Virus record (IMG/VR): IMGVR_UViG_3300003877_000001
Span: 124,001-188,000 of that record
Strand: one strand, 5' to 3'
DNA length: 64,000 nucleotides
Of the stretch, positions 1-25,113 are shown in pieces; the first letter of the stretch is position 1, and the number at the start of each line of letters is the position of its first letter. The notes beneath the pieces are model-generated. The model saw nothing but the letters and a program-made list of their open reading frames with translations. It was not told the origin of the DNA and did no database searches. The position numbers were made by a program, and so were the translations under genes.

Positions 1-2
1 AT

Positions 3-668
3 ACATATGTATTTGAAATTATATATCCTGAAAATCGTATTGTTATTGATTATGGTAAGACTGAAGATTTGGTTCTTTTAGGTGTTATCAATACTGATGG
101 TGGTGATGAAATGTCATATGATGATATGGTGTATAATCACTCTGATGAATTTACTATTGTTGAAAAGTATGATGTAACATCTGATATTTCTAAATTAAAG
201 GAATTAGAAGAAGATAACAAAGAAGGATTTGTTGTACGTTATTCTAATGGCTTCCGTGTAAAAGTAAAATTCGATGAATATTGCAGATTACATAGAATCG
301 TTACTAACGTATCTAATAAGACAATTTGGGAATCATTGAAAAATGGTGAAGGATTGGATGAAGTTATTGATAGAGTTCCTGATGAATTCTACAATTGGGT
401 TAGACGTACTGAAAAGGGTTTAAATGATATGTATATTGAAATTGAAGTTGAAACATTACGTGAATTCGTTAGGGTAACTAATTTAGTTAGTTTGAAAAAT
501 GGATTTGATCCTTTTGAAAGAAAGAAAGAATTTGCTTTAATAGCAAAAGAATTTAAACATTCTGGATTATTATTTTCTATGTATAATAATAAAAATTATT
601 CTGAAGCAATTTGGAAAATGATTAAACCAGACTGGTCAACACCATTTAGAGATGGGTATGAAAATTAG
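3..668 (+). CDS. T4 Rnl1-like RNA ligase, 5'-truncated by window edge
   Basis: Frame is open from base 3 (TYVFEIIYPENRIVIDYG); nucleotidyltransferase motifs EGFVVRY and RVKVKFDEY. Confidence 0.8.
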   Translation, partial: TYVFEIIYPENRIVIDYGKTEDLVLLGVINTDGGDEMSYDDMVYNHSDEFTIVEKYDVTSDISKLKELEEDNKEGFVVRYSNGFRVKVKFDEYCRLHRIVTNVSNKTIWESLKNGEGLDEVIDRVPDEFYNWVRRTEKGLNDMYIEIEVETLREFVRVTNLVSLKNGFDPFERKKEFALIAKEFKHSGLLFSMYNNKNYSEAIWKMIKPDWSTPFRDGYEN

Positions 669-760
669 TAAAAATAAAGGGGCGATAATTCGCTCCTTTT
701 TCATTTTATAGTATTTTACATTAGATATAAAAGTATTTATATTTGTAGATAAATAAAAAA

Positions 761-1069
761 ATGGAACTAACAGAATACACTATATATAAACATAATAATA
801 AAGCATATTTGAGATTTGAAAGTACTGAAAGATTTTTATGGTTCTTCAAAAAACAAGTATATAGATTTATACCAAGAAAGCATCTCTACAATAGTAAGGG
901 AAAGAAAATCCGTAAGTGGACGATACATATGTTCCCAACTGAAATGAGTACATATTATGAGCATTTATTAGTGTGTGGGAATAAAAATGAAAGAGAAAAA
1001 TTTATTGAAAAATACCCACATATTCAACTATATTTAAACGAATTAAACACTTTTATTAAATTTTATTAA
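761..1069 (+). CDS. hypothetical protein
   Basis: 102-aa ORF with A-rich start context. Confidence 0.6.
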   Translation: MELTEYTIYKHNNKAYLRFESTERFLWFFKKQVYRFIPRKHLYNSKGKKIRKWTIHMFPTEMSTYYEHLLVCGNKNEREKFIEKYPHIQLYLNELNTFIKFY

Positions 1070-1074
1070 AAATT

Positions 1075-1102
1075 TGTAACCTTTTTCTTGCATGTTACGT
1101 AT
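1075..1102 (+). promoter_or_regulatory. ECF-like promoter TGTAAC-N17-CGTAT upstream of tRNA array 1 leader
   Basis: One of about 13 intergenic copies of the motif. Confidence 0.7.
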
Positions 1103-1128
1103 TTATAAACGATTTTTGTAAACAATTA

Positions 1129-1194
1129 ATGAAAAAAGATATTATAATAAGTAAAAAAGACATAACTGGTGGTAGTGTAATACCACCAAAATAA
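1129..1194 (+). CDS. short uORF MKKDIIISKKDITGGSVIPPK
   Basis: ATG just after the promoter; contains hairpin TGGTGGTA/TACCACCA. Confidence 0.45.
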   Translation: MKKDIIISKKDITGGSVIPPK

Positions 1195-1204
1195 ATTAGA
1201 AATC

Positions 1205-1288
1205 ATGACAAAAGTTAATACATATAAGAAATATAAAAACTATCCAGATACTGGATCAGGTATTCTATGTACTAACTTTGGTGGCTAA
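1205..1288 (+). CDS. attenuator leader peptide MTKVNTYKKYKNYPDTGSGILCTNFGG (Tyr/Lys-rich)
   Basis: Hand translation; 1253-1270 is complementary to 1305-1322 (antiterminator). Confidence 0.75.
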   Translation: MTKVNTYKKYKNYPDTGSGILCTNFGG

Positions 1289-1310
1289 AGCCATAAAGTT
1301 TAAAATATAG

Positions 1311-1344
1311 AAACCCTGATTCAGAAATGAGTCAGGGTTTTTTT
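1311..1344 (+). terminator. intrinsic terminator of attenuator 1
   Basis: AAACCCTGATTC-agaaat-GAGTCAGGGTTT followed by a T run, 10 nt before tRNA-Tyr. Confidence 0.85.
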
Positions 1345-1353
1345 ATGCCATAT

Positions 1354-1434
1354 TGTACGGTTGAACAGGTGGTGAGTTCCGCACACTGTAAATGTGCTGC
1401 TTCGGCTATGGGGGTTCGATTCCCTTCCGTACAA
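1354..1434 (+). tRNA. tRNA-Tyr(GTA)
   Basis: Acceptor TGTACGG/CCGTACA; anticodon arm GCACA-ctGTAaa-TGTGC; variable arm; TTCGA loop. Confidence 0.85.
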
Positions 1435-1618
1435 CAATTAACATTGTTAATTGAATTAGACTATATTAAAAAGTAATATAGTTCAAAAAACAATATTAAA
1501 ATTGTCATAGAATGGTACATGAAGGACTTATTGATAAAAATAATATAATTCCATTATCAGAATATTTACCTGATAATTGGAAAATTTATTATTATGGATA
1601 ATTTAAAATGATAAAATA

Positions 1619-1966
1619 ATGGTAAGGTTAAGTGAAATATTGCATGGAAGTGGTGTCTTTTCAAAAGACTTCAAAACTAGGATTGCCCAAAAGCAAATCA
1701 GAGTTAATGGAGAAACTATTGAAGGTGACATAGAGATTGACATAGATTTCATTCATAAGGATTTCTTTATGGATATTGGAGATTTAATGTTTAGCTTAAT
1801 GGATAGAGATATTTGGCAATTGCAGTTACAGATTTTCGGTATAGAAAATTTAGCAACATCAAATATTACCAATAGTTTAACTGAAGAATTAAGGAAGTTT
1901 CTAATGGTGAGAACTTCAAAGAAAAATGTTTTTGTAATTAAATTAAATGAAAAGCTGCTGAATTAG
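1619..1966 (+). CDS. S4-like RNA-binding domain protein (putative)
   Basis: N-terminus RLSEILHGSGVFSKDFKTRIAQKQIRVNGE resembles the S4 motif. Confidence 0.45.
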   Translation: MVRLSEILHGSGVFSKDFKTRIAQKQIRVNGETIEGDIEIDIDFIHKDFFMDIGDLMFSLMDRDIWQLQLQIFGIENLATSNITNSLTEELRKFLMVRTSKKNVFVIKLNEKLLN

Positions 1967-2163
1967 TTTGGATGTCCAAAGTAAAAACAAATGAATGGAT
2001 TGATAAAGTAAGAGCAAGATTAGGTGAACAAACACTTTTAAATGAATTTAATGGACAAAGAGATTTGTTCGAAGATAAAGAATTAATATAATGAGAACTA
2101 AATTTAAACATAAACAGTAGACCTTCTACATTTCCCCTTTCGGGTGTGTAGAGGTTCTCCTAT

Positions 2164-2236
2164 GCATCCGTAACTTAACTGGTAAAGTAGGTAACTCTTA
2201 ATTATCGAGATAAGGGTTCGACTCCCTTCGGATGCA
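2164..2236 (+). tRNA. tRNA-Lys(CTT)
   Basis: GCATCCG/CGGATGC; GGTAA-ctCTTaa-TTATC. Confidence 0.9.
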
Positions 2237-2398
2237 CAACACTACACATTGTGTAGTGTATCGCAAATCAAAATAAAAATTTTTAATTTGTTGATTATTA
2301 ATATATTATAATCAAATATCGTGTATTGCGATATGCGATATAGTAATAATTTGAGTAAAGTATTGTTTTTCGGTACTTATCTCTAAAAATTACTAAAT

Positions 2399-2481
2399 AC
2401 ATCGGTGGCAGAGAGGCTTATGCACCTGACTTTTAATCAGGGTTGTTCGCAACAACGTGGGTTCGAATCCCACCCGATGTA
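2399..2481 (+). tRNA. tRNA-Lys(TTT) with long variable arm
   Basis: ACATCGG/CCGATGT; CCTGA-ctTTTaa-TCAGG; V-arm GTTG-ttcg-CAAC. Confidence 0.85.
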
Positions 2482-2532
2482 CAATAATTATCTTTAAATT
2501 GTTTTAATTGTTACAATATAAAGATAAAATAT

Positions 2533-2605
2533 GCCATCATAACTCAATTGGTAGAGTATTCCGCTTTTAACGGAAGAGTTGAGGGTTCAAGTCCCTCTGG
2601 TGGTA
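2533..2605 (+). tRNA. tRNA-Lys(TTT)
   Basis: GCCATCA/TGGTGGT; TTCCG-ctTTTaa-CGGAA. Confidence 0.9.
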
Positions 2606-2654
2606 CTAGTTACTTTTGGTTTTTAAATAGTATTTATATTTAAAAGCTGATAAT

Positions 2655-3092
2655 ATGAAAAAAATATGTAGTAAATGTAAAGATGAAAAAGAGATTGATG
2701 AATTTAGTAAAAACAAATCTCGTAAAGATGGTCACAATAACTATTGTAAAGAATGTATGAGATCACATTCAAAAAAATATTATAGTGAGAATAATGAAAA
2801 AATGAGAAAACAAATAAGTATTGGAAATAAAAGAAGAATTGATGAAAATAGAAAAAAGATATTTGAATATAAATCAACCCATTCATGTGTAGATTGCGGT
2901 GAAGATGATCCAATAGTTTTACAGTTTGATCATCTTAATAATAAAAAATACCAACTTTCAACAATGACAAATGGTGGATACTCTTGGGAAACAATAATGA
3001 AAGAAATTAAAAAATGTGATGTGCGTTGTGCTAATTGTCATATGAGAAGAACAGCAACGCAATATAGTTGGTATGTTAATGAATTAAATTAA
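2655..3092 (+). CDS. HNH endonuclease with Zn-finger
   Basis: CxxC pairs; LQFDH...CANCH. Confidence 0.8.
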   Translation: MKKICSKCKDEKEIDEFSKNKSRKDGHNNYCKECMRSHSKKYYSENNEKMRKQISIGNKRRIDENRKKIFEYKSTHSCVDCGEDDPIVLQFDHLNNKKYQLSTMTNGGYSWETIMKEIKKCDVRCANCHMRRTATQYSWYVNELN

Positions 3093-3097
3093 AAATT

Positions 3098-3319
3098 ATG
3101 GAAACTAGATTATGGGAAATTGAATTTGTATCTTGTGAAGGGAATGATCGATGGTTAGTTGGTCGTTTTCCTGAAGAATATGAAGCATGGGAAGTTGAAT
3201 CTAGATTTAGAGAAACTTCTTATGGTTGTGGTGACGATCCAGCAGAATTTAGATCATGTGAATGGTATTGGGATCAATCTGTTGAAGCAAATGAAGATTG
3301 TTGCCATGATTATACTTGA
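3098..3319 (+). CDS. hypothetical acidic protein
   Basis: ORF with typical start context. Confidence 0.6.
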   Translation: METRLWEIEFVSCEGNDRWLVGRFPEEYEAWEVESRFRETSYGCGDDPAEFRSCEWYWDQSVEANEDCCHDYT

Positions 3320-3391
3320 ATAATGTAAAATATAATTTAATAATTGTTGTGTTTTTGTAACATATATCTTTATTTATACGTAAAAGAATGT

Positions 3392-3679
3392 ATGAAGAAA
3401 AAATTGATATACTACTCGCTATATTCGAATAAAGAACAGGACAGTCTAATTGCAATGGCTTATTCGGAAGAAGATTTAAAAGAACTTTGTTTAGAAAATA
3501 CTGAAGGTGTTCTATTTGAATATGATGTCGAACAAAAGGAAGGTCATATGGACACATTATTAAACGAAAGACTCTATAAAGGTAAGTTAAAATTAGCTAA
3601 AAAAGTAAAAACAAAAAAGAAAACAGAAGAAGATAATGACGAAATAATGCTCAATTCTGAAATAGGTGATTTAAGATAA
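3392..3679 (+). CDS. hypothetical protein
   Basis: ATG at 3392 follows the promoter motif at 3356-3383. Confidence 0.55.
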   Translation: MKKKLIYYSLYSNKEQDSLIAMAYSEEDLKELCLENTEGVLFEYDVEQKEGHMDTLLNERLYKGKLKLAKKVKTKKKTEEDNDEIMLNSEIGDLR

Positions 3680-3776
3680 ATCACTTTTTTTAAATTCTAT
3701 TGTCAAAATCTTGACAATACAAAATAATTGTTATATATTTACAGGATAATAATATTATTTTAATCCCTGTTTAAAA

Positions 3777-4544
3777 ATGACAAAGAAAAAAACGGTAAAA
3801 AAGACAACCACGACAACTGTGGTAACAGAAGAAGTTGTAGCAAGCAAGACCCAAATTGTTTGCATATTAGATGCTTCAAGTTCAATGAACTCAATTATAG
3901 ATGAAGCAAGAGATGGATTTAATAAATTCATTGATGATCAGAAAAAACTTGGTGATGAAGCATCTTTAACTGTTGCAACATTCTCTTCAGGTGGTGAAAA
4001 TAATGGTTATGAATTACTATTCAATGATGTTTCACTTAATAATGTAGAACATTTAACACAAGAAGATTGGTATGGTAATGGTCTGACTGCATTATATGAT
4101 GCAATTGGTAAAGCTATTACTGATATATCTGCTGCACATAAAAAAATGAAGAAAGCAGATAGACCAGATAAGGTTTTATTTGCAATTGTGACTGATGGGC
4201 ATGAAAATGCAAGTAGAGAATTCACTCAGAGTTCAATTAAGACACTTATTAGTAAACAAGAAAAGCAAGATTGGCAATTTCTTTATTTAGCTGCTGATCA
4301 AGATGCAACAGTTGCTTCAAGTGCAATTGGTGTTAGTCGTGGTAGTACGTTAAGCTATACCAATAGTACTACTGGAAATGCAGTAGTATTTGATACACTA
4401 TCAATGGCTTCAACTAATTATAGAGGTATGAGTAAATCTAGTGCAACTTTTACTAGTGATAGTGCAAATCTAATGTCAACAGTCACAGACGGTAGTGGTG
4501 TTGTTGGTGAGAAAAAAATAAATTCAGATAAAATTAAGAAATAA
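3777..4544 (+). CDS. von Willebrand factor A domain protein
   Basis: MIDAS ILDASSSM; TALYDAIG; IVTDGHEN. Confidence 0.85.
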   Translation: MTKKKTVKKTTTTTVVTEEVVASKTQIVCILDASSSMNSIIDEARDGFNKFIDDQKKLGDEASLTVATFSSGGENNGYELLFNDVSLNNVEHLTQEDWYGNGLTALYDAIGKAITDISAAHKKMKKADRPDKVLFAIVTDGHENASREFTQSSIKTLISKQEKQDWQFLYLAADQDATVASSAIGVSRGSTLSYTNSTTGNAVVFDTLSMASTNYRGMSKSSATFTSDSANLMSTVTDGSGVVGEKKINSDKIKK

Positions 4545-4572
4545 AATATTTTTTGTTTAATTGTTTAGGTTT

Positions 4573-4602
4573 AAAGGTGTCGAATTCGACACCTTTTTTT
4601 TT
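4573..4602 (+). terminator. intrinsic terminator
   Basis: AAAGGTGTCG-aatt-CGACACCTTT followed by a T run. Confidence 0.75.
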
Positions 4603-4820
4603 ATAAAAATTTTAATATGGTCATTGCCAGACAATTAAAGTTCTATTGTTTTTTATGAAAAAAATACATTAAAAAATAATTGAAAATAATTGCGTTTCTG
4701 CAAGAATATTTCAATCTTTGTGAGTATTTAAAAATACACCAATTTAATAATATAGGATAAAAGTTAATCAATTCTAACATTGAAATACTTAAATAACTTT
4801 AATAAAATTATATAAAATAC

Positions 4821-7800
4821 ATGGAAGAAACTTTAGAAGAACAACCTAAAGAGGGTAAAGTATATTCTAAATATACAAGAGATGAAATTCACGAAGCCAC
4901 ATTAGCCTATTTTAATGGCGATAATTTAGCAACAGAAGTTTGGATAAACAAATACTGTTTAAAAGATTCAGATGGTAATCTTTACGAAAAAACTCCTGAT
5001 GATATGCATTGGAGATTAGCAAAAGAATTAGCAAGAATAGAAAAGAAATATACAAACCCTTTATTCGCTGAAGAAATATACGAAAAAATCAAACATTTTA
5101 AGAAAATAGTTCCACAAGGTTCACCAATGTCAGGCATTGGAAATGATTTTCAAATTGTATCCATCTCAAATTGTTTTGTAATTGGTAATGAAAATGAAGC
5201 AGATTCATATGGTGGTATTTTTAAATTAGATCAGGAAATTGCACAACTACAAAAAAGAAGAGCAGGTGTTGGTGTAGATTTATCTTTTATAAGACCTGAA
5301 GGTTCACCTGTAAAAAATTCTGCATTAACATCAACAGGTATCGTTCCATTTATGGAAAGGTTCTCAAATACAACAAGAGAAGTTGCACAAGATGGTAGAC
5401 GTGGTGCTTTAATGGAATCTATTTCAATTAAACACCCAGATGCTGAAGCATTTATTGATGCCAAATTAGATGGTACTAAAGTAACAGGTGCAAATGTATC
5501 GGTTAAAATTGATGATGATTTTATGGAAGCTGCTACACAAGGCACAACCTATACACAACAATATCCAATAAATTCTAATAATCCAACATTTACTAAAGAA
5601 GTTAATGCATCTAAAATATGGAAAAAAATTATCCATAATGCATGGGATAAGGCAGAACCGGGTATTTTATATTGGGATACTTTAATTAATGAATCTGTTC
5701 CTGATTGTTATAGTGATTTAGGTTTTAAAACAATATCAACAAACCCTTGTCTTACTTTAGATTCGAACATAATGACAGATAAAGGTAATAAAACTGTTGA
5801 AGAATTGATTGGTGTTAAATTCATCGCAATGGTCGATGGTGGTTTTTATTCATCGACAGATAAAGGTTTTTTTATAACAGGTGAAAATAGAGATGTTTTT
5901 CAAATAACTACAAAAAAAGGATTTAAAATAAAGTCAACAGATAATCATGAATTTAAACAAGTACTTGAAATAAATAGAAATGATAAGAAATATAAATGGA
6001 CTGAATTAAAAAACTTTCAAATTGGTGATACTATTAATCTTAACAACAATATTGGGATGAATTGGAATGGAGAAGGAAATTTTGAAGAAGGTTGGTTAAT
6101 TGGAAGTTTATTAGGTGATGGAACATTCGATAATGAATCCGCAATTTTAAGATATTGGGGTGAAGATAGAAAAGAAACTAAAAATTATGCTATTGAATGT
6201 ATAAAAAATAATTTAAAATATAGATTGGATTTGGGTAACTCTAAAGATGATTTAGAAATCGAACAAGTTAAAAGTGTTAATTTAAAAAAATTATCATACG
6301 AATATGGTGTTTTAAATGATAAAAGAATTAACAATAAAATAGAAAAAGCAAGTAGTAAGTTTTATAAGGGATTCTTATGTGGGTGGTTTGATGCTGATGG
6401 AACTGTAAATAATAATATTGAAAAGGGTGTTAACGTTAGACTAGCATCATCAATTTTGGAAAATTTATATGTGGCACAAAGAATGTTATCTAAAATTGGT
6501 ATTATCTCAACCGTTTATGAAAATAGAAGAGAAGAACAATATAAAAAAATGCCCGATGGTAATGGTGGGTATAAAATGTATAAAACAAAGTCACAACATG
6601 AGTTATCAATATCTAAGGATAATCTATTAATCTTCCAAGAGGAAATAAATTTTATTGAAAATAGTAAAAAAAATAAATTAAAAAATGCTTTAAATAATTT
6701 AGATAGGGGGTTATATAGAGAAAGATTTGTTGATACTATTAAATCTATTGAATATGTTGGTGTTGAGAATGTTTATGATTGTCAAATCCCCGATAAAAAT
6801 GAATTTGATGCAAATGGGATTAGTACACATAATTGTGGTGAAATTCCTTTATGTGCAAATGATAGTTGTAGATTATTAGCTATTAATTTATTTGGTTACG
6901 TTGTAAATCCATTTACTGATAATGCTTTTTTTGATTGGGAATCTTTTAAAATAGATGTTAGAATTGCTGAAAAATTAATGGATGATATTATTGATCTTGA
7001 ATTAGAAAAAATAGATAAAATATTAGCTAAAATAGATTCCGATCCAGAAGATTTACACATTAGAGAAACCGAAAGAAATCTTTGGGTTAGTATTAAAGAT
7101 AAAGCAGAAAGAGGTCGTAGAACAGGATTAGGTATTACAGCAGAAGGTGATATGTTAGCTGCATTAGGTTTAACATATGGTACTGACGAAGCTAATAAAT
7201 TTTCAGAAGAAGTACATAAACAATTAAAACTTGAAGCATATCGTTCATCAGTATATATGGCAAGAGATAGAGGTGCTTTCCCAATGTATGATACTGAAAG
7301 AGAATTAAATAATCCATTTATTCAACGTATAAAAGACGAAGACTCTGATCTATATGATATGATGGTAATGTATGGTAGACGTAATCTAGCACTACTTACA
7401 ATAGCACCTACGGGTACAGTATCTATTATGACTCAAACTACATCAGGTATTGAACCTGTGTTCTTAGTTTATTATACTAGAAGAAGAAAAATAAATCCAA
7501 ATGATAAAAACGTTAGAGTTGATTTTACCGATGAATTAGGTGATACTTGGATGGAATATCCAGTATTTCATCATAATTTTGTTACTTGGTTAGAAGTTAA
7601 TGGTTACGATGTTGAAGATATTATTGAACACTATACTTCAGATCAAATTAACGAATTAGTTAAACTTTCACCATATTACGGTGCAACATCTAATGATGTT
7701 GATTGGGTTAAAAAAGTAGAAATGCAAGGAATGGTTCAAAAACATATTGATCATTCAATATCAGTTACTGTAAATCTCCCTAATGATGTAACTGAAGAAA

Positions 7801-8483
7801 CAGTTGCTAATGTATATGAAGCTGGTTGGAAACATGGATGTAAAGGAATTACTGTTTATCGTGATGGTTCACGTTCTGGTGTTTTAGTTACTGAAACAGA
7901 AAAGAAAAAGAAAGAAAAAGATAAGTTATTTAAAGATAATCATGCACCTAAAAGACCTAAAAGATTAAAAGCTGAAATTATAAGATTTCAAAATAATCTT
8001 GAAAAATGGATTGGTGTTGTTGGTATGATGGATGGAAGACCATATGAAGTTTTTACTGGTCGTATGCAAAATGGTTTATCTGAATTACCTACAAGTCTTA
8101 TTGAATGTGAAGTTGTTAAAGTAAGAGATGAAAATGGTATTAAAAGATATGATATTGAATATGTTGATTCTAATGGTGAAAAAGCTGTACATACAGGATT
8201 AAATCATACATTCAATGAAGAATATTGGAACTATGCTAAAATGATTAGTTCAGTATTACGTCATGGTATGCCAATAATCTATGTATTAGATTTAATACAA
8301 TCACTTAACTTAAATGATGAACATTTAAATACTTGGAAGAATGGTGTAGCTAGAGTAATAAAAAAATACATCAATGATGGTGAAAAGGGAAATGGTACAT
8401 GTCCAAATTGTGGGTCAGATAATTTAGAATATAAAGAAGGTTGCCTTACATGTGTATCATGTGGTAATAGTAAATGTGGATAA
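4821..8483 (+). CDS. nrdJ: class II (adenosylcobalamin-dependent) ribonucleotide reductase with intein
   Basis: SNCFV, TNP[intein]CGE, IAPTGT, KGITVYRDGSR; C-terminal CPxCG...EGC..C..CG. Confidence 0.9.
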   Translation: MEETLEEQPKEGKVYSKYTRDEIHEATLAYFNGDNLATEVWINKYCLKDSDGNLYEKTPDDMHWRLAKELARIEKKYTNPLFAEEIYEKIKHFKKIVPQGSPMSGIGNDFQIVSISNCFVIGNENEADSYGGIFKLDQEIAQLQKRRAGVGVDLSFIRPEGSPVKNSALTSTGIVPFMERFSNTTREVAQDGRRGALMESISIKHPDAEAFIDAKLDGTKVTGANVSVKIDDDFMEAATQGTTYTQQYPINSNNPTFTKEVNASKIWKKIIHNAWDKAEPGILYWDTLINESVPDCYSDLGFKTISTNPCLTLDSNIMTDKGNKTVEELIGVKFIAMVDGGFYSSTDKGFFITGENRDVFQITTKKGFKIKSTDNHEFKQVLEINRNDKKYKWTELKNFQIGDTINLNNNIGMNWNGEGNFEEGWLIGSLLGDGTFDNESAILRYWGEDRKETKNYAIECIKNNLKYRLDLGNSKDDLEIEQVKSVNLKKLSYEYGVLNDKRINNKIEKASSKFYKGFLCGWFDADGTVNNNIEKGVNVRLASSILENLYVAQRMLSKIGIISTVYENRREEQYKKMPDGNGGYKMYKTKSQHELSISKDNLLIFQEEINFIENSKKNKLKNALNNLDRGLYRERFVDTIKSIEYVGVENVYDCQIPDKNEFDANGISTHNCGEIPLCANDSCRLLAINLFGYVVNPFTDNAFFDWESFKIDVRIAEKLMDDIIDLELEKIDKILAKIDSDPEDLHIRETERNLWVSIKDKAERGRRTGLGITAEGDMLAALGLTYGTDEANKFSEEVHKQLKLEAYRSSVYMARDRGAFPMYDTERELNNPFIQRIKDEDSDLYDMMVMYGRRNLALLTIAPTGTVSIMTQTTSGIEPVFLVYYTRRRKINPNDKNVRVDFTDELGDTWMEYPVFHHNFVTWLEVNGYDVEDIIEHYTSDQINELVKLSPYYGATSNDVDWVKKVEMQGMVQKHIDHSISVTVNLPNDVTEETVANVYEAGWKHGCKGITVYRDGSRSGVLVTETEKKKKEKDKLFKDNHAPKRPKRLKAEIIRFQNNLEKWIGVVGMMDGRPYEVFTGRMQNGLSELPTSLIECEVVKVRDENGIKRYDIEYVDSNGEKAVHTGLNHTFNEEYWNYAKMISSVLRHGMPIIYVLDLIQSLNLNDEHLNTWKNGVARVIKKYINDGEKGNGTCPNCGSDNLEYKEGCLTCVSCGNSKCG
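5748..6833 (+). mobile_element. intein (362 aa) with LAGLIDADG endonuclease in nrdJ
   Basis: Begins CLTLDS after NP and ends THN before the catalytic C; motifs LIGSLLGDG and FLCGWFDADG. Confidence 0.92.
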
Positions 8484-20258: not shown

Positions 20259-20285
20259 GTAACCTTTTTTACTTTTGCTACGTAT
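20259..20285 (+). promoter_or_regulatory. ECF-like promoter GTAAC-N17-CGTAT for tRNA array 2
   Basis: Recurrent motif. Confidence 0.7.
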
Positions 20286-20329
20286 TTATGAGAAACCAAA
20301 AAGGTTTAACAAATTATAAAAGAATAAAA

Positions 20330-20455
20330 ATGAAAAATAACAATACATATATTAGTCGAATTTCGAATCTACTCACATCGAGTATATGTGGGAATGGTAC
20401 GTTTAATGGTAGACGTGCTAAGATCGGGTCTAATGTTGATATTGTAATTTCATAA
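20330..20455 (+). CDS. attenuator leader peptide MKNNNTYISRISNLLTSSICGNGTFNGRRAKIGSNVDIVIS
   Basis: Codons mirror the downstream anticodons; 20421-20438 is complementary to 20473-20489. Confidence 0.8.
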   Translation: MKNNNTYISRISNLLTSSICGNGTFNGRRAKIGSNVDIVIS

Positions 20456-20477
20456 AATATAATATAAACAAACAACA

Positions 20478-20511
20478 GAAACCCGATCTCATAAAGAGTT
20501 CGGGTTTTTTT
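20478..20511 (+). terminator. intrinsic terminator of attenuator 2
   Basis: AAACCCGATCTC-ataaa-GAGTTCGGGTTT followed by a T run. Confidence 0.85.
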
Positions 20512-20602: not shown

Positions 20603-20677
20603 GGTCTTGTTAGTTTAGTTGGTTATAATACCACACTGGTACTGTGGAGACTGCGGTTCGAATCCGCAACAGGACTC
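20603..20677 (+). tRNA. tRNA-Thr(GGT), atypical
   Basis: GGTCTTG/CAGGACT; CCACA-ctGGTac-TGTGG. Confidence 0.65.
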
Positions 20678-20807
20678 TTAATAAAAAGTTATTTGACGTA
20701 TTGAACATTAAATGAAATGAAAACTAAGTGAAATTTTAATGTTATTTAGTTTTCAAAAATAATCTATTTTAAATCAGTTTTTATTTCATTTCGTAATATT
20801 TATTATT

Positions 20808-21492
20808 ATGAAATGGAATAAAAACGAAATAGATTACTGTAAAGAAAAATTTTCTAATGGAGAATCTCTAATTGATATTAGTAATGAATTAAATAGAACA
20901 ACAAAAGCAATTCAAATTAAAATGAGTCGATTAGGTGTTTTTAGACCACAAAAAAAATATTATATGACCTATATTTGTGGAAATTGTAAAACAACATTTA
21001 CTGCATTAATAAGTGAGAAAAGAAAATATTGTTCTGAACAATGTGCATCAATAATAAATAATAAAAAAAGAAAAAAAATGTAAACGTTGTAAGCAAACAA
21101 TTAATAATAATAATAACATTTATTGTAGTAAAAAATGTGAAATGTCAAACAAAGAAAATTATTATTTTACTAAAATAGAAAATAATGATTTAAATGATAT
21201 TAATCATAATACAGCAGAAAGATGGGTTAAAAGATATTTAATTCACAAATATGGTGAAAAATGTATGAAATGTGGTTGGAGTGAAATTCATAAAATAACA
21301 AAAAAAGTGCCGATCCAATTAAACCATATTAATGGTGATTCAGATAATAATAATTTATTAAATGTTGAGTTACTTTGCCCTAATTGTCATTCATTAACAC
21401 ATAATTTTGGATCATTAAATTTTGGTAATGGTAGAACAAAAAGAAAATTAGAGAGAAATAAAAGATATAAAAAAGTTAGCGTGTCCGATTGA
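20808..21492 (+). pseudogene. HNH endonuclease split by a frameshift in an A-run (ORFs 20808-21083 and 21142-21492)
   Basis: Second frame is open from 21079 (CKRC..YCSKKC); QLNHING..N...LLCPNCH; stop codon lies inside tRNA-Cys. Confidence 0.7.
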
Positions 21493-21545
21493 TAAGGTGG
21501 ATGGTTGCAACCCATTTTATGCAGGTTTGAATCCTGTCGCTAACT
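21475..21545 (+). tRNA. tRNA-Cys(GCA)
   Basis: GTTAGCG/CGCTAAC, U73; GATGG-ttGCAac-CCATT. Confidence 0.85.
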
Positions 21546-21665
21546 CTAATTATACCGAATTCGGTATAAATAAAATCATAGTAATGTAATGACCTCAAAA
21601 GTCATTTTGTTACTATGAATAAACATCGGGGATGATATACTATTTTATCGTAGTACCCCGTCCAT

Positions 21666-21737
21666 GCGAATATAGTATAATGGCTATTATATGATCCTTC
21701 CAAGTTCGAGATGTCGGTTCGATTCCGACTATTCGCT
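21666..21737 (+). tRNA. tRNA-Gly(TCC)
   Basis: GCGAATA/TATTCGC, U73; loop ctTCCaa. Confidence 0.85.
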
Positions 21738-21807
21738 CAAAGTTGCTATTCATATCTACTTAATGACTTCATAAGTCATTTCAATGATACAAATAACAAC
21801 AAAACAT

Positions 21808-21890
21808 GCCCTATTGGTGGAACAGTAGACACGCTGGTTTTAGAAGCCAGTGTCAGAAATGGCGTGTAGGTGCAAATCCTACATAGGGTA
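21808..21890 (+). tRNA. tRNA-Leu(TAG)
   Basis: CTGGT-ttTAGaa-GCCAG; long V-arm. Confidence 0.88.
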
Positions 21891-21951
21891 CTAATAACGT
21901 AAAATATAATTTACAATAACATACATAATTGTAAATTATATTTAATCATAT

Positions 21952-22034
21952 GCCCATATGATGGAACGGTAGACATGCCACACTAAGAACGTGGTGTTAG
22001 AAATGACGTGTAGGTTCAAATCCTACTATGGGTA
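21952..22034 (+). tRNA. tRNA-Leu(AAG)
   Basis: GCCCATA/TATGGGT; loop ctAAGaa; long V-arm. Confidence 0.82.
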
Positions 22035-22146
22035 CAATCCTGAGTACAGGTTAACTCTGTGATGTTGTGTGACATATAAGTTTAGAGGTTGAGAAATCAA
22101 TACGGCTTCAATGAGAGAATAACGTAATTTATTCAAAGTCACAATT

Positions 22147-22218
22147 GCTCTTGTAGTTCAACGGTTAGAATATGTGGCTTATATCCACCAGACGAAGGTT
22201 CGACTCCTTCCAAGAGTA
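22147..22218 (+). tRNA. tRNA-Ile(TAT)
   Basis: GCTCTTG/CAAGAGT; GTGG-ctTATat-CCAC. Confidence 0.8.
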
Positions 22219-22224
22219 CTAAAG

Positions 22225-22297
22225 GATGGTGTAGCACAAAGGCAGGTGCACTTGACTGTTAATCAAGAATATGTGGGTTCGACCCCCACCGCCATCG
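22225..22297 (+). tRNA. tRNA-Asn(GTT)
   Basis: CTTGA-ctGTTaa-TCAAG; G73. Confidence 0.88.
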
Positions 22298-22302
22298 CAT
22301 AT

Positions 22303-22374
22303 TGTCTCGTAGTATAACGGTTAGTATAATTGCCTGATACGCAATAGATAAGGGTTCGATTCCCTTCGAGACTA
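22303..22374 (+). tRNA. tRNA-Ile(GAT)
   Basis: ATTGC-ctGATac-GCAAT. Confidence 0.85.
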
Positions 22375-22436
22375 CAAAAATTAATTAAAACCTTTAACGA
22401 ATCGAACTTTTTTTATTTTTTTCAGTATTTATATAT

Positions 22437-22850
22437 ATGAAAAAAACATGTACTATTTGTAATATAAAAAAAGATTTTGAAGAATTCTCTTGGAGAAATA
22501 AAAGTAAAAATATTAAACATTCACAATGTAAAGATTGTAAGAAAATTATCGATAATAAACATTATAGTGTTTCGAAAAAAAGAAGAGAAGATATTAGAAT
22601 TAGGTCAAAAATTCATTATAATTTTCTTAGAGAATATATAAAAAGATTAAAATTATTTGGCGAATGTAATGTGTGTGGAGAAAAAAGATGGTATGTTTTA
22701 GATTTTCACCATATAAATGAAAAAAATGAAAATATTAGTTTTTTAGTTAAAAGTGGAGTATCTATTTTTACATTAAAATCTGAAATTAGAAAATGTGAAT
22801 TGGTTTGTTCTAATTGTCATAGAGAAATCCATCATTTTAAAAAAAAATAA
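22437..22850 (+). CDS. HNH endonuclease with Zn-finger (same family as 2655-3092)
   Basis: CxxC; LDFHH...EIRKC.LVCSNCH. Confidence 0.8.
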   Translation: MKKTCTICNIKKDFEEFSWRNKSKNIKHSQCKDCKKIIDNKHYSVSKKRREDIRIRSKIHYNFLREYIKRLKLFGECNVCGEKRWYVLDFHHINEKNENISFLVKSGVSIFTLKSEIRKCELVCSNCHREIHHFKKK

Positions 22851-22853
22851 TTT

Positions 22854-22925
22854 GGGATAGTAACTCACTGGTAGAGTGTCGTTTTGAAGCAGCGAAGGTA
22901 GTAGGTTCGATTCCTACCTGTCCCA
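22854..22925 (+). tRNA. tRNA-Phe(GAA)
   Basis: GGGATAG/CTGTCCC; TCGTT-ttGAAgc-AGCGA. Confidence 0.8.
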
Positions 22926-22982
22926 CAAAGGATGTTTCTTTTATTGAAAAATGATATCAAAGTAAATGAAAGCTAAGTCCAT

Positions 22983-23055
22983 AGTGATGTAGTTTAGAGG
23001 TCAAAACGCCACTCAGAGATAGTGGAAATCGGTAGTTCGATCCTACCCATCACGA
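22983..23055 (+). tRNA. tRNA of undetermined identity (loop caGAGat, A33, short V-arm)
   Basis: GTGATG/CATCAC; CCACT/AGTGG; T-arm GGTAG-ttcgatc-CTACC. Confidence 0.55.
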
Positions 23056-23061
23056 CTAAAA

Positions 23062-23146
23062 GCCGATTTCGCATAGTGATCGATTGCACTGGTCTTGTAA
23101 ACCAGTAGGTTTATACCTCACGTCAGTTTGAATCTGACAATCGGCT
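23062..23146 (+). tRNA. tRNA-Thr(TGT) with long variable arm
   Basis: GCCGATT/AATCGGC; CTGGT-ctTGTaa-ACCAG; V-arm AGG-tttata-CCT. Confidence 0.82.
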
Positions 23147-23174
23147 CAAAAAATTGACTCAATGAGTCAAATAT

Positions 23175-23248
23175 TGTCTCGTAGTTCAACTGGTGAGAGC
23201 ACCACGCTGATAACGTGGAAGTTATGGGTTCGAATCCCATCGAGACAA
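23175..23248 (+). tRNA. tRNA-Ile(GAT)
   Basis: TGTCTCG/CGAGACA; CCACG-ctGATaa-CGTGG. Confidence 0.9.
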
Positions 23249-23321
23249 CTTCATAGATGCAGGTTCGAATCCTGTCTCTTCCTTCGGGGAGTGTGGTGTA
23301 ACTGGAAAGCATAATGGACTT
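23249..23321 (+). ncRNA. circularly permuted tRNA-like RNA (3' half, TTCG, 5' half)
   Basis: TTCAT-agat-GCAGG-ttcgaat-CCTGT-CTCTTCC-ttcg-GGGAGTG-tg-GTGT-aactggaaa-GCAT-a-ATGGA-ctt. Confidence 0.75.
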
Positions 23322-23411
23322 AGAGGGTTGGCAGAGTCTGGCTTATTGTACTAGTCTTGAAAACTAGCATACGTTCATAGCGTATCGTGGGTTCGAATCC
23401 CACACCCTCTG
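23322..23411 (+). tRNA. tRNA-Ser(TGA)
   Basis: AGAGGGT/ACCCTCT, G73; CTAGT-ctTGAaa-ACTAG; long V-arm. Confidence 0.9.
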
Positions 23412-23416
23412 CATTT

Positions 23417-23489
23417 GATTTGGTAGTAATAATGGTAAAACGTCAGCCAGTTAAGTTGATAGATGTAGGTTCGAATCCTACCCAAATCG
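23417..23489 (+). tRNA. tRNA-Asn(GTT), A33 variant
   Basis: GATTTGG/CCAAATC, G73; TCAGC-caGTTaa-GTTGA. Confidence 0.7.
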
Positions 23490-23562
23490 CAAACAAATGT
23501 TTTATTGATAAATAAATATTTTGTTAACGTATAAGTAGACGTACTTATATAGGAGTTGTTTT

Positions 23563-23632
23563 ATGTAAATAGCATAATGGCAATGCAGCACCATAAAAGG
23601 TGTGTATGTAGGTTCGATTCCTATTTTACTAA
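23563..23632 (+). pseudogene. degenerate tRNA (6-nt anticodon loop)
   Basis: D- and T-arms present; GCACC-ataaaa-GGTGT; mispaired top of acceptor. Confidence 0.5.
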
Positions 23633-23650
23633 AACAACTATAACAATTAT

Positions 23651-23723
23651 ATTTTCGTAGTTCAATGGATAAGAACATACAAGTGCGAATTGTAAGATAT
23701 GGGTTCGAATCCCATCGAAAATA
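23651..23723 (+). tRNA. tRNA-Arg(GCG)
   Basis: ATTTTCG/CGAAAAT; TACAA-gtGCGaa-TTGTA. Confidence 0.8.
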
Positions 23724-23771
23724 CTATTTTTTTAAAATTGAAACGTATTTATATGTATAAGCGTTTTAATT

Positions 23772-24461
23772 ATGATTAAATATGAAAAAAAAAGATTAGA
23801 ATTAATTGTTTCTAAATCAGAAACATATAGACAGGTATTGTTAGCATTTGAACGAAACACTTCATCTGCATCATATAAAATTTTAAAAAGAAAATTAAAA
23901 GAATGGAATATTTCCATTGATCATTTTCTTTCTAGTAAAGATGTTGTACATAAATTACAAAAAGAGGGTAAATTAATAAAATATTCTGATGACGATATTT
24001 TTAAAAAATCTAATATTGGTAGAGGTACTGTTAAGAAACGATTTTTAACGAAAGTAGAAAAGAAATGTGTTTTATGTGGGCAAGATGAAAATTGGAATGG
24101 CATGAAAATATCTTTAATAATGGATCATAAAAATGGAATTAATATTGATCATAGATTTGAAAATTTAAGATTACTTTGCCCTAATTGTAATGCAGGAATA
24201 CCTACACATTGTAAAGGTAATATTGGTATTTTAAATAATATAAACAAACAAATTAAATTAAACAATAAAATAGATAAAAGAACCTTATATAATGGAGTTG
24301 GAAAACCTAAACAACGCAAAGTTGAAAGACCATCATACAATGAATTAATTAAAGATATTAACAATTTAGGATATTTAGGTACTGGTAGAAAATACGGTGT
24401 TAGTGACAATTCTATTAGAAAGTGGAAAAATTTTTATGAAAAACAAGCCTCTATGGTGTAA
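23772..24461 (+). CDS. HNH endonuclease with C-terminal HTH
   Basis: CVLCG..MDHKNG..NLRLLCPNCN; GRKYGVSDNSIRKW; 3' end overlaps tRNA-Arg. Confidence 0.85.
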   Translation: MIKYEKKRLELIVSKSETYRQVLLAFERNTSSASYKILKRKLKEWNISIDHFLSSKDVVHKLQKEGKLIKYSDDDIFKKSNIGRGTVKKRFLTKVEKKCVLCGQDENWNGMKISLIMDHKNGINIDHRFENLRLLCPNCNAGIPTHCKGNIGILNNINKQIKLNNKIDKRTLYNGVGKPKQRKVERPSYNELIKDINNLGYLGTGRKYGVSDNSIRKWKNFYEKQASMV

Positions 24462-24518
24462 AGGATAGCATTATTGTCTTCGAAACAAAAGGTCAGGGTT
24501 CAAATCCTTGTGGGGGTA
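24447..24518 (+). tRNA. tRNA-Arg(TCG)
   Basis: GCCTCTA/TGGGGGT; TTGT-ctTCGaa-ACAA. Confidence 0.82.
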
Positions 24519-24523
24519 CAATT

Positions 24524-24565
24524 GCGAGTGTGGTGCTAACGGTAACACATTTCCAATCACTCGCT
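24524..24565 (+). pseudogene. internally deleted tRNA-Gly (acceptor + D-arm only)
   Basis: GCGAGTG/CACTCGC-T with a D-arm and TTCCAA remnant; no T-arm. Confidence 0.55.
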
Positions 24566-24633
24566 CAAATAATATTTCAGCTAGATGAAATTTAAATGTG
24601 GAAACTACGTAACGGTTTAAACAGTTATTTAAT

Positions 24634-24707
24634 GCGAGTAACGCATAAATGGTGGTGCACCTGCTTGCCAAGCAGGAATAGAGTCGGTTCAATCCCGATT
24701 ACTCGCT
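24634..24707 (+). tRNA. tRNA-Gly(GCC)
   Basis: GCGAGTA/TACTCGC; CCTGC-ttGCCaa-GCAGG. Confidence 0.88.
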
Positions 24708-24772
24708 CTAATTCAAGTGTTTAATGATTGCAAATCATAGCAGACCTTCCAAGTCATGGCTTGAGTTTTTAT

Positions 24773-24844
24773 GGTGCAGTAACTCAGGGGTAGAGTGGTT
24801 GATTGAAGATCAACTGGACGTTGGTTCGAATCCAACCTGCACCA
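24773..24844 (+). tRNA. tRNA-Phe(GAA)
   Basis: GGTGCAG/CTGCACC; GTTGA-ttGAAga-TCAAC. Confidence 0.9.
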
Positions 24845-24849
24845 CAAAC

Positions 24850-24922
24850 AGGGGATTAGTGTAATGGATTAGCACATGATTCTTCTAAAATTAGAGTATG
24901 AGTTCGAATCTCATATCCCCTA
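24850..24922 (+). tRNA. tRNA-Arg(TCT)
   Basis: AGGGGAT/ATCCCCT; TGATT-ctTCTaa-AATTA. Confidence 0.82.
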
Positions 24923-24989
24923 CTATGGTTGTTCGATTATACTTTCAAGTATTTTTTATGCATTAGTTAGAAGTAGAGCAAGAAGTAAA

Positions 24990-25100
24990 GCAAAAAAATT
25001 AGGTATGAATAAATGTGTTATATGTGGTTATGATAAACAATGAAAGTAATTTAATTCCTTTGTGTCGTAATGATCATTGGGAATATGATTATAATATGTT
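24990..25100 (+). pseudogene. HNH endonuclease remnant
   Basis: NKCVICGYDKQ* ... NLIPLCRNDHWEYD. Confidence 0.55.
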
Positions 25101-25113
25101 AAATATATAATAT

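Follow-up and report, generated by a model that had tools for sequence, protein, structure and literature searches.

Why phages carry tRNA genes is an old question. The locus examined here raises a related one, namely whether a phage can make transcription of such genes conditional on a shortage of the tRNAs that they encode. The window analysed (the whole stretch of 64 000 nt, positions 124,001 to 188,000 of IMG/VR record IMGVR_UViG_3300003877_000001, a giant uncultured phage) contains near one end a short Tyr/Lys-rich ORF and a strong terminator directly upstream of tRNA-Tyr and tRNA-Lys genes. A sequence-only reading had interpreted this arrangement as a trp/his-type attenuator sensing Tyr and Lys codons, and had inferred that stalling would follow cleavage of host tRNAs. 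Every sequence feature listed in that reading was confirmed, and the attenuator interpretation is supported in silico by strong comparative evidence, whereas the proposed trigger remains an inference.

Anatomy of the leader region

The features of the locus are collected in Table 1. The antiterminator pairing noted in the sequence-only reading (1253–1270 with 1305–1322) proved to be a little longer than described.

Table 1. Features of the Tyr/Lys unit and of the second unit in the window (all on the + strand)
Feature	Position	Sequence or remarks
Conserved promoter region	1073–1118	TTTGTAAC 1073–1080; CTTG 1087–1090 (-33-like); invariant core CGTATTTAT 1098–1106; GATTTTTG 1111–1118 (-7-like; relatives have TAnnTTTG)
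Leader ORF	1205–1288	27 codons, ATG 1205, TAA 1286–1288; MTKVNTYKKYKNYPDTGSGILCTNFGG
Regulatory codons	1223–1243	TAT AAG AAA TAT AAA AAC TAT (YKKYKNY); Tyr TAT 1223, 1232, 1241; Lys AAG 1226, AAA 1229, 1235
Region 1 (5' strand of anti-antiterminator)	1219–1247	Tyr/Lys codons plus ATCCAG; pairs with 1251–1271
Small hairpin	1242–1256	ATCCAG (1242–1247), ATA, CTGGAT (1251–1256)
Region 2	1250–1271	Pairs with region 1 or region 3; CTGGATCAGG..TTCTATGT
Antiterminator, first helix	1251–1260 with 1315–1324	CTGGATCAGG with CCTGATTCAG
Antiterminator, second helix	1263–1270 with 1305–1312	TTCTATGT with ATATAGAA
Inner hairpin enclosed by 2:3 helix	1274–1300	Contains the leader stop codon
Region 3 (3' strand of antiterminator)	1304–1325	Includes the terminator 5' arm
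Terminator 5' arm	1312–1323	AACCCTGATTCA; loop GAAA; 12-bp stem
Region 4	1328–1344	Terminator 3' arm TGAGTCAGGGTT 1328–1339; run of 7 T, 1338–1344
tRNA-Tyr(GTA)	1354–1435	Starts 10 nt after the T-run
tRNA-Lys(CTT)	2164–2237	
tRNA with TTT anticodon	2399–2482	84 nt, long variable arm; relatives carry the same conserved form
tRNA-Lys(TTT)	2533–2606	Canonical length
Second, paralogous unit	20281–20511	
Promoter core of second unit	20281–20289	CGTATTTAT
Leader ORF of second unit	20330–20455	MKNNNTYISRISNLLTSSICGNGTFNGRRAKIGSNVDIVIS
Region 2 of second unit	20420–20428	AAGATCGGG
Terminator of second unit	20479–20507	T-run to 20511
tRNA-Thr	20604	Followed by the 21-tRNA cluster

These features exceed chance expectation. 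The 155-nt region folds at -44.7 kcal/mol, compared with -23.6 ± 3.6 for shuffled sequences (z = -5.9), and when folded only up to position 1324 its minimum-energy structure is the antiterminator. The antiterminator duplex has an energy of -23.8 kcal/mol, against -8.6 ± 2.3 in 2000 dinucleotide shuffles, and neither any shuffle nor any of 1273 natural windows of this genome reached that value. The leader contains three Tyr and four Lys residues, and of 613 short ORFs in the window only two, one of them this leader, have a 7-residue stretch with at least six K/Y and at least three of each. Of nine strong + strand terminators in the window, only the two that precede tRNA clusters have an upstream competitor for the 5' arm (-15.4 and -15.5 kcal/mol, against -3.8 to -9.1). 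However, in the window the inner 1:2 hairpin is weaker than the 2:3 helix, and an untranslated transcript might therefore read through rather than terminate.

The invariant core of the promoter region occurs six times in the window against 1.0 expected, and the only TTG-N18–22-[TG]AnnTTTG match in positions 1–3000 is the one upstream of this leader. A general sigma-70 promoter scan was at chance level (21 hits against 17.3 expected) and was not used. The TAnnTTTG element probably corresponds to the -7 motif of Bacteroidota. No Shine–Dalgarno sequence precedes the ATG, as would be expected for a Bacteroidota host, although that host is inferred from the promoter motif alone. Rfam searches at permissive thresholds returned only tRNAs and sub-threshold noise, the best leader hit being Thr_leader at 21.9 bits (gathering score 55, E = 0.68), and no T-box match was found in positions 1–4000 even at E values up to 1.

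Homologous elements in related phages

A profile search (nhmmer) of loci recovered through the neighbouring RNA ligase gene identified 83 copies of the element, 57 of them distinct, in related uncultured jumbo phages. Each has the same promoter motif, an ATG, a Tyr/Lys-rich core, four pairing regions and a terminator. Leader length is 19–31 aa, indels occur in multiples of three, and the terminator 5' arm starts 106–140 nt after the ATG. Of 211 tRNA calls within 2.5 kb downstream, 199 are Tyr(gta), Lys(ttt) or Lys(ctt), the rest being doubtful intron-mode calls. In 21 elements the first tRNA starts only 1–17 nt after the T-run, but in about half of the relatives 60–460 nt separate the terminator from the first tRNA, in some cases with repeated motifs, and this interval could hide a second promoter.

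K and Y together make up 62 % of leader residues 6–17, against a background of 14.4 %, and the last K/Y codon lies 8–16 nt (median 12) before region 2, which is probably close to the 3' reach of a stalled ribosome. Region 2 itself is conserved as RNA. Its codons are ATC (48 of 62) and GGG (48 of 82), compared with 14 % and 7 % in genomic usage, and the motif is kept in different reading frames, encoding RIGN, MESGL, GSG or SVSG.

RNAalifold on a plain MAFFT alignment recovered only the terminator, and we therefore imposed the structures obtained from single-sequence folds and counted pairs. The terminated structure is 87 % paired, against 37–50 % when partners are slid, with 31 double-change cells; within it the two 1:2 helices are 79 % and 92 % paired. 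The antiterminator core is 96.9 % paired, against 6–73 % when slid; this pairing, with five double-change cells, was reached by none of 500 shuffles. Truncated minimum-energy folds show the antiterminator in only about half of the members, whereas duplex energies show it in all. Most members are identical in the core helices, so strict covariation rests on a few divergent members, and related sequences can also beat shuffle controls without any structure. Divergent members change both strands, the window having CTGGATCAGG:CCTGATTCAG, whereas the members at loci L114 and L016 have GAGATCGGGA:TCCTGATCTT and TGAGACTG:CAGTCTTA, respectively. The closing pair of hairpin 1 is GC in 42 members and AU in nine, a change of Lys AAG to AAA together with Leu CTT to Phe TTT.

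No near relative of the window's own variant was recovered. The closest ligase relatives (67–79 % identity) sit on short or non-syntenic contigs without the element, and the nearest leaders are those of L114, L016 and a third locus, L147. IMG/VR searches with the two flanking small proteins returned only the phage itself, and in a blastn search of GenBank phages the region matched only tRNA genes of unrelated phages. A weak hit of the family consensus in LR756502.1 proved spurious, being a coding region with no tRNA. The best identity of the ligase to proteins of cultured phages was 36 %, in Streptomyces phages, and no cultured model phage was found by this search.

Related leaders before other tRNA clusters and trp genes

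Of particular interest is the finding that the same scaffold precedes other tRNA clusters, with leaders that mirror those clusters. A leader beginning MKTTVTTYQPKQTQGGKP.. precedes Pro, Gln, Tyr, Thr, Gly and Lys tRNAs, and one beginning MKTNNTHMISNSNWRRISH.. precedes Ser, His, Trp, Asn and Arg tRNAs. A further example is the second unit of the window (nhmmer E = 2.7e-5), in whose leader 25 of 29 codons are decodable by its own cluster, against a background of 42 % (P about 1e-6).

The scaffold also has a bacterial counterpart, which serves as a positive control. In about 17 Sphingobacterium genomes it carries a WWW leader before trpE, trpG and trpC. In one such locus (L287, 3788–3935; leader MTRRYTNTNWWWPEAISIGN..) the similarity extends to the sequence, region 2 being ..ATCGGGAAT and the terminator AAACCCGAT..ATCGGGTTTTTT, with a promoter of the TAnnTTTG type and the same fold switch. 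This element differs from that of the phage in its Trp codons, its chromosomal location and its control of tryptophan biosynthesis genes.

Leader-peptide attenuation and alternative explanations

Our current working hypothesis, to which we assign a probability of about 0.8 on sequence evidence alone, is that the element is a ribosome-mediated transcription attenuator whose regulated genes are tRNA genes. Transcription would start at the conserved promoter and a ribosome would begin translating the leader. Where Tyr and Lys codons are decoded quickly, the ribosome would run through region 2 to the stop codon inside the 2:3 loop, region 2 would be either occupied or re-paired with region 1, and the terminator (3:4) would form, so that RNA polymerase stops before tRNA-Tyr. 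Where tRNA-Tyr or tRNA-Lys is scarce, the ribosome would stall on the YKKYKNY codons and cover region 1, leaving region 2, which begins 10 nt after the last Tyr codon, free to pair with region 3 as it emerges. The terminator could not then form, and polymerase would read into tRNA-Tyr and probably on to the three distal tRNA genes. Co-transcription of the latter, which lie 820–1190 nt downstream behind ORFs, is inferred only, although we found no terminator and no promoter motif between them. The result would be negative feedback in which the sensed molecules are the operon's own products.

The anatomy resembles that of the classical attenuators of amino-acid operons (trpL, hisL, pheL, thrL, leuL, ilvL), with a short leader rich in cognate codons, mutually exclusive 1:2/3:4 and 2:3 structures, and an intrinsic terminator just before the regulated genes. 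It differs in that the regulated genes are tRNA genes rather than biosynthetic enzymes, the element is carried by a phage, the leaders sense two amino acids here and up to about eight in sister elements, the stop codon lies downstream of region 2 and no Rfam leader family matches. T-box riboswitches also gate a terminator/antiterminator choice according to the state of a specific tRNA, but they bind uncharged tRNA directly and need no translation, whereas the leaders described here have the features of translated ORFs. We found no description of attenuation of tRNA genes in the open literature, although our searches did not cover all journals.

It is interesting to speculate on a more general role. 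A clade of uncultured jumbo phages, probably infecting Bacteroidota, may control each of its tRNA clusters with a 'codon-mirror' leader that lists the codons read by the tRNAs encoded downstream, such that each cluster is switched on only when decoding of exactly those codons is limiting. We consider this likely, though less secure than the attenuator itself. It would be the first case of ribosome-mediated attenuation acting on tRNA genes, would act as a direct feedback sensor of tRNA abundance, and would let a phage detect and repair loss of host tRNAs, whatever the cause. Supply conditional on decoding stress, which the leaders suggest, bears on both the codon-compensation and the anti-nuclease hypotheses for phage tRNAs. 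The elements are compact (about 140 nt) and modular, and could serve as sensors of tRNA availability.

One possible alternative is that the attenuator is real but serves mainly as an anti-defence switch, with the trigger inferred in the sequence-only reading, namely host tRNA cleavage by PrrC-, PARIS- or retron-type nucleases. On this view cleavage of host tRNA-Lys or tRNA-Tyr would cause the stalling, the phage would induce replacement tRNAs, and the neighbouring enzymes would repair the cut ones. Indeed, the element lies 540 nt downstream of a T4 Rnl1-like RNA ligase gene, with Tpt1/KptA, a metallophosphoesterase and IF3 just upstream, and the arrangement of ligase followed by a Tyr/Lys tRNA cluster is conserved in about 25 IMG/VR loci. 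tRNA-Tyr and tRNA-Lys are shown targets of retron-Eco7 PtuAB and of PrrC, respectively, and phage tRNAs rescue infection (PMC11555353); the general hypothesis that phage tRNAs counter host tRNA nucleases has been set out previously (PMC10264068). T5 is reported to overexpress tRNA-Tyr from a strong promoter (PMC11555353), whereas expression here appears to be conditional and feedback-controlled, and no nuclease or host is known for this phage. However, the same device precedes clusters for Thr, Gly, Leu, Ile, Asn, Phe, Ser, Arg, Pro, Gln, His, Trp and Cys, too many species for one nuclease, which points to a general supply-and-demand feedback, and the canonical Lys(TTT) tRNA has an ordinary CTTTTAA anticodon loop, so that no escape mutation is evident. 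We regard this trigger as plausible, but this main role as less likely than not.

Alternatively, the attenuator may sense tRNA charging rather than tRNA abundance, and so adjust phage tRNA output to the nutritional state of the host. A stalled ribosome cannot tell a missing tRNA from an uncharged one, and the scaffold matches that of the Sphingobacterium amino-acid operon attenuator. This seems doubtful, because making more tRNA does not relieve amino-acid starvation and because leaders track the exact tRNA set downstream, including rare codons such as CGA, TCG, CTC and ACG, which fits decoding capacity better than amino-acid pools.

The unusual conservation of region 2 and the terminator across phage classes and in Sphingobacterium could reflect a site, the GAATCGGGAAT / CCCGATTC motif, bound by a protein or RNA factor, or tRNA binding directly as in a T-box, the ORF then being incidental. 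This is very unlikely, as the ATG, frame and stop position are conserved, leader content changes with the downstream tRNA set while the scaffold stays the same, Rfam reports no T-box or other family, and the spacing appears to match a ribosome footprint. Finally, although the peptide is conserved at the amino-acid level in the main family, a functional Tyr/Lys-rich micropeptide followed by a simple terminator (its own or that of the upstream gene) and independently made tRNAs can be all but dismissed, given the RNA-level conservation of region 2, the rare codons frozen at its synonymous sites, the conserved alternative pairing, the lack of room for a promoter in the 21 elements with 1–17 nt between T-run and tRNA, and the presence of unrelated peptides on the same scaffold before other tRNA sets.

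The attenuator-like element and its surroundings

Everything that the sequence-only reading had described, namely a Tyr/Lys-rich leader ORF, a small hairpin, a terminator and downstream tRNA genes for tyrosine and lysine, is present in the sequence where that reading had placed it, and the features are listed with their positions in the table below. The tRNA genes were placed by ARAGORN and Rfam. The 155 nt around the element fold at -44.7 kcal/mol, against -23.6 +/- 3.6 for shuffles. When the transcript is folded only up to 1324, before the 3' arm of the terminator exists, the minimum-energy structure changes to two pairings, 1251-1260 with 1315-1324 and 1263-1270 with 1305-1312, and this is the antiterminator. 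Its duplex energy is -23.8 kcal/mol, whereas dinucleotide shuffles of the upstream 96 nt give -8.6 +/- 2.3, and none of 2000 shuffles and none of 1273 natural windows of the same genome reach the observed value. The Tyr/Lys run is also unusual for this 27% G+C genome, as only 2 of 613 short ORFs, one being this leader, have at least 6 K/Y with at least 3 of each in 7 residues.

Positions of the features of the element, of the second unit in the window and of related loci (L numbers denote loci; A3 is the alignment of the distinct homologous elements)
Feature	Location	Position	Sequence or remark
T4 Rnl1-type RNA ligase, stop codon	Window	668	
Promoter core	Window	1098, 16274, 20281, 23744, 31057 (+) and 30986 (-)	CGTATTTAT
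Extra 5' UTR stretch	Window	1129-1194	Includes a 21-codon ORF, MKKDIIISKKDITGGSVIPPK
Hairpin in the extra stretch	Window	1167-1188	TGGTGGTA-GTGTAA-TACCACCA
Leader ORF	Window	ATG 1205 to TAA 1286-1288	MTKVNTYKKYKNYPDTGSGILCTNFGG
Leader core	Window	1223-1243	TAT AAG AAA TAT AAA AAC TAT
Small hairpin	Window	1242-1256	ATCCAG-ATA-CTGGAT
Region 1	Window	1219-1247	
Region 2	Window	1250-1271	
Region 3	Window	1304-1325	
Region 4	Window	1328-1344	
Antiterminator, first pairing	Window	1251-1260 with 1315-1324	CTGGATCAGG with CCTGATTCAG
Antiterminator, second pairing	Window	1263-1270 with 1305-1312	TTCTATGT with ATATAGAA
Terminator	Window	1312-1339	AACCCTGATTCA / GAAA / TGAGTCAGGGTT; seven T ending at 1344
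tRNA-Tyr(GTA)	Window	1354-1435	
Hairpin before tRNA-Lys(CTT)	Window	2119-2163	GACCTTCTACA..TGTAGAGGTTC
tRNA-Lys(CTT)	Window	2164-2237	
Hairpin after tRNA-Lys(CTT)	Window	2238-2262	ACACTACAC-ATTG-TGTAGTGT
tRNA with a TTT anticodon	Window	2399-2482	84 nt
tRNA-Lys(TTT)	Window	2533-2606	
Ribonucleotide reductase large subunit	Window	4821-8483	1220 aa
Second unit, promoter core	Window	20281-20289	
Second unit, leader	Window	20330-20455	MKNNNTYISRISNLLTSSICGNGTFNGRRAKIGSNVDIVIS; 41 codons
Second unit, region 2	Window	20420-20428	AAGATCGGG
Second unit, terminator	Window	20479-20511	
Second unit, tRNA cluster	Window	20604-26406	
tRNA with a CTA anticodon, and tRNA-like gene with an undetermined anticodon	Window	33717-33787 and 23562-23633	
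RNA-repair and translation genes	L001, contig just upstream of the window	701-5905	
tRNA-Lys(CTT)-like gene	L009, also L015, L019, L033, L036	5540-5660 in L009	84-87 nt; preceded by GTGAGCAGAGGAAGGTTCTGACAGGCA
Repeats between terminator and first tRNA	L026, also L027, L028, L049, L056	6700-6838 in L026	(C/T)ATGAAAAAC / TGCATAAAAAC
Repeated start context after the leader stop codon	For example L138, L024, L014	A3 columns about 105-135	ATAAAGCAATGA..
trp-type attenuator	L287 and about 17 other Sphingobacterium loci (L226, L227, L236, L241, L247, L248, L256, L258, L269, L273, L290, L295, L298 and others)	3740-3935 in L287	MTRRYTNTNWWWPEAISIGN..

The window is part of a 325,854-bp IMG/VR contig, a jumbo phage, to which no cultured or GenBank phage is close. 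Directly upstream of the element lies a run of RNA-repair and translation genes encoding a calcineurin-like phosphoesterase, a Tpt1/KptA RNA 2'-phosphotransferase, a DNA methylase, translation initiation factor IF3 and a T4 Rnl1-type RNA ligase. In relatives, tRNA-Leu(TAA), tRNA-Leu(CAA), tRNA-Met and a tmRNA lie upstream of the ligase.

Conservation, alternative pairing and codon content

An alignment of the ligase and its relatives was used to fetch 160 loci from IMG/VR and JGI metagenomes. In about 25 IMG/VR loci the ligase is followed within 0.3-4 kb by a cluster made only of Tyr(GTA), Lys(TTT) and Lys(CTT) tRNA genes, and upstream of the first tRNA there is almost always a short ORF such as MFTFGTYYYGKKSYKKQLMRIGNAVFKIQC, followed by a terminator AACCCGATTC..GAATCGGGTT and a T-run. 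A profile search found 83 copies, 57 of them distinct, which were aligned (A3); the leaders nearest to that of the window are those of loci L147 (MRNVGTYKKYYKNYKKNSYGIGILCSNIIER), L114 (MTNSKTYKSKYYYKGNLMRSGFVCLDERQY) and L016 (MKTVNAYYKQYYYKRNVCETDITMSLSE). Across the family the ATG is invariant, leaders are 19-31 codons long, indels in the coding part come in threes and the terminator 5' arm starts 106-140 nt after the ATG. After the leader stop codon, many members repeat the start context with a second ATG inside the inner hairpin, which could be a tiny second ORF or a re-initiation site. A promoter-like block, TTTGTAAC .. (C/T)TTG .. CGTATTTAT .. TAnnTTTG, lies upstream. TAnnTTTG with an upstream TTTG is probably the Bacteroidota promoter consensus, which would also explain the absence of a Shine-Dalgarno sequence. 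The promoter core occurs 6 times in the window against 1.0 expected and probably marks a class of phage promoters. Only the sites at 1098 and 20281 are followed by attenuator units. The 5' UTR in the window is about 50 nt longer than in relatives, the extra stretch holding a hairpin and a short ORF.

For the 57 distinct elements, 199 of 211 tRNA calls within 2.5 kb downstream are Tyr(gta), Lys(ttt) or Lys(ctt), and every element with more than about 350 nt of downstream sequence has such tRNAs. In 21 elements the first tRNA starts 1-17 nt after the T-run. Some relatives, however, have gaps of 60-460 nt, sometimes with repeats, between the terminator and the first tRNA; in L026, L027, L028, L049 and L056 the gap is 140-150 nt and holds 5-6 repeats, which may be a binding-site array or an extra promoter. 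In L009, L015, L019, L033 and L036 a tRNA-Lys(CTT)-like gene with an insertion in the anticodon region, seen only with the intron option of ARAGORN, lies between the attenuator and the tRNA cluster and is preceded by a conserved stretch.

Single-sequence folds of divergent members all give the same picture. The full-length RNA forms a long imperfect hairpin in which the Tyr/Lys codons (region 1, about nt 14-45 from the ATG) pair with nt 52-78 (region 2), and the terminator (regions 3:4) forms as well, whereas in RNA truncated before the terminator 3' arm, region 2 pairs with the terminator 5' arm (region 3) around an inner hairpin. Duplex energies for 2:3 are -11 to -24 kcal/mol in all members except L017, at -5.8. 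On A3 the terminated structure (35 pairs) is 87.2% paired, against 37-50% when partners are slid, with 31 double-change cells, and the 8-bp antiterminator core is 96.9% paired, against 6-73% when slid, with 5 double-change cells; in each case the number of double-change cells was reached by 0 of 500 shuffles. Most members share identical core helices, so the covariation rests on few lineages. Compensatory changes are seen, the majority GAATCGGG:CCCGATTC being replaced by CTGGATCAGG:CCTGATTCAG in the window, GAGATCGGGA:TCCTGATCTT in L114 and TGAGACTG:CAGTCTTA in L016. The closing pair of hairpin 1 is G-C in 42 members and A-U in 9, corresponding to Lys AAG to AAA together with Leu CTT to Phe TTT.

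Two kinds of constraint act within the one ORF. Upstream of region 2 the constraint falls on codon identity, as K+Y make up 62% of residues 6-17 against 14.4% in long ORFs of the same loci, and both TAT/TAC and AAA/AAG are used. Within region 2 the constraint falls on nucleotides, the codons being ATC (48 of 62 Ile) and GGG (48 of 82 Gly), although these account for only 14% and 7% of Ile and Gly codons in the same loci. The motif is also read in different frames in different members, as R-I-G-N, M-E-S-G-L, G-S-G and S-V-S-G. The first base of the last K/Y codon lies 8-16 nt (median 12; 10 in the window) before region 2, approximately the distance over which a ribosome stalled with that codon in its A site would be expected to protect the mRNA.

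Units before other tRNA clusters and in Sphingobacterium

A structural pattern, ATCGGG N40-70 CCCGAT N8-18 TCGGGTTTTT, found 53 loci in IMG/VR. Most are Tyr/Lys units, but the same scaffold also precedes other tRNA clusters with quite different leaders. The leader MKTTVTTYQPKQTQGGKPSVSG.. precedes Pro, Gln, Tyr, Thr, Gly, Gly, Lys and Lys tRNAs, and 83-89% of leader residues before region 2 have a tRNA downstream; the leader MKTNNTHMISNSNWRRISHLESG.. precedes Ser, His, Trp, Asn, Arg, Arg and Ser tRNAs, the corresponding value being 63%; and leaders containing W or C precede tRNA-Trp or tRNA-Cys. One such unit is in the window itself, followed by tRNA-Thr and the 21-tRNA cluster. In its leader, 25 of the 29 codons before region 2 can be read by the tRNAs of the cluster, against a 42% background (binomial P about 1e-6), and these include the rare codons CGA, TCG twice, CTC, ACG, GGG and CGT. 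Of the nine strong + strand terminators in the window, only these two, that of the Tyr/Lys element and that of the second unit, have an upstream competitor for the 5' arm.

The same pattern in 185,579 bacterial and archaeal genomes gave mostly chance hits, but also a coherent set of about 17 Sphingobacterium genomes with the leader MTRRYTNTNWWWPEAISIGN.., sharing the region 2 and terminator sequence of the phage elements. In L287, one of these Sphingobacterium loci, the unit has a TAaaTTTG promoter motif, is followed by anthranilate synthase I (trpE), its amidotransferase subunit (trpG) and indole-3-glycerol-phosphate synthase (trpC), and shows the same fold switch. The locus L253, from a Verrucomicrobia MAG, has a WWW leader, MNKMAQHWWWHGSGLKP. 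The scaffold is therefore that of a trp-type leader-peptide attenuator in Bacteroidota, which serves as a positive control for the mechanism and hints at the host phylum.

Proposed mechanism and the downstream tRNA genes

The most likely reading is classical ribosome-mediated attenuation with tRNA genes as the target. We infer, in the absence of experimental evidence for translation, stalling or read-through, that fast decoding of the Tyr/Lys codons gives 1:2 plus 3:4 and transcription terminates, whereas stalling on those codons gives 2:3 and transcription reads through into the tRNA genes. Because the products are the sensed molecules, the circuit would be a negative feedback on decoding capacity. 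One weak point is that in the window the inner 1:2 hairpin is weaker than 2:3. The mechanism itself is textbook, but full-text searches found nothing on leader-peptide attenuation of tRNA genes, in phages or in bacteria, and no Rfam family matches; within the literature searched, the regulated gene class, the phage setting and the multi-codon mirror leaders appear to be new. The sequence-only reading had proposed host anticodon nucleases as the trigger. This fits the RNA-repair neighbourhood and published cases (PMC11555353, PMC10264068), yet with the host unknown it remains tentative, and equivalent devices for many other tRNAs favour a general supply-and-demand control, of which nuclease attack would be one case.

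In the window 0.8-1.2 kb with ORFs separates tRNA-Tyr from the other three tRNA genes, although no terminator or promoter motif was found between them. Strong hairpins without T-runs flank tRNA-Lys(CTT), share the TGTAG/CTACA motif and may be processing signals. The 84-nt tRNA with a TTT anticodon in the window belongs with an 83-86-nt tRNA, conserved in many relatives (L014, L016, L024, L025, L036, L093, L123, L129, L139), that has a UUU (Lys) anticodon and a long, covarying variable arm (type II shape), and which is distinct from both the phage tRNA-Tyr and the canonical tRNA-Lys. Elsewhere in the window are a tRNA with a CTA anticodon, which would read the amber stop codon (labelled Pyl by ARAGORN), and a tRNA-like gene with an undetermined anticodon. 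The ribonucleotide reductase large subunit is interrupted by an intein with a LAGLIDADG endonuclease domain, as identified with Pfam.
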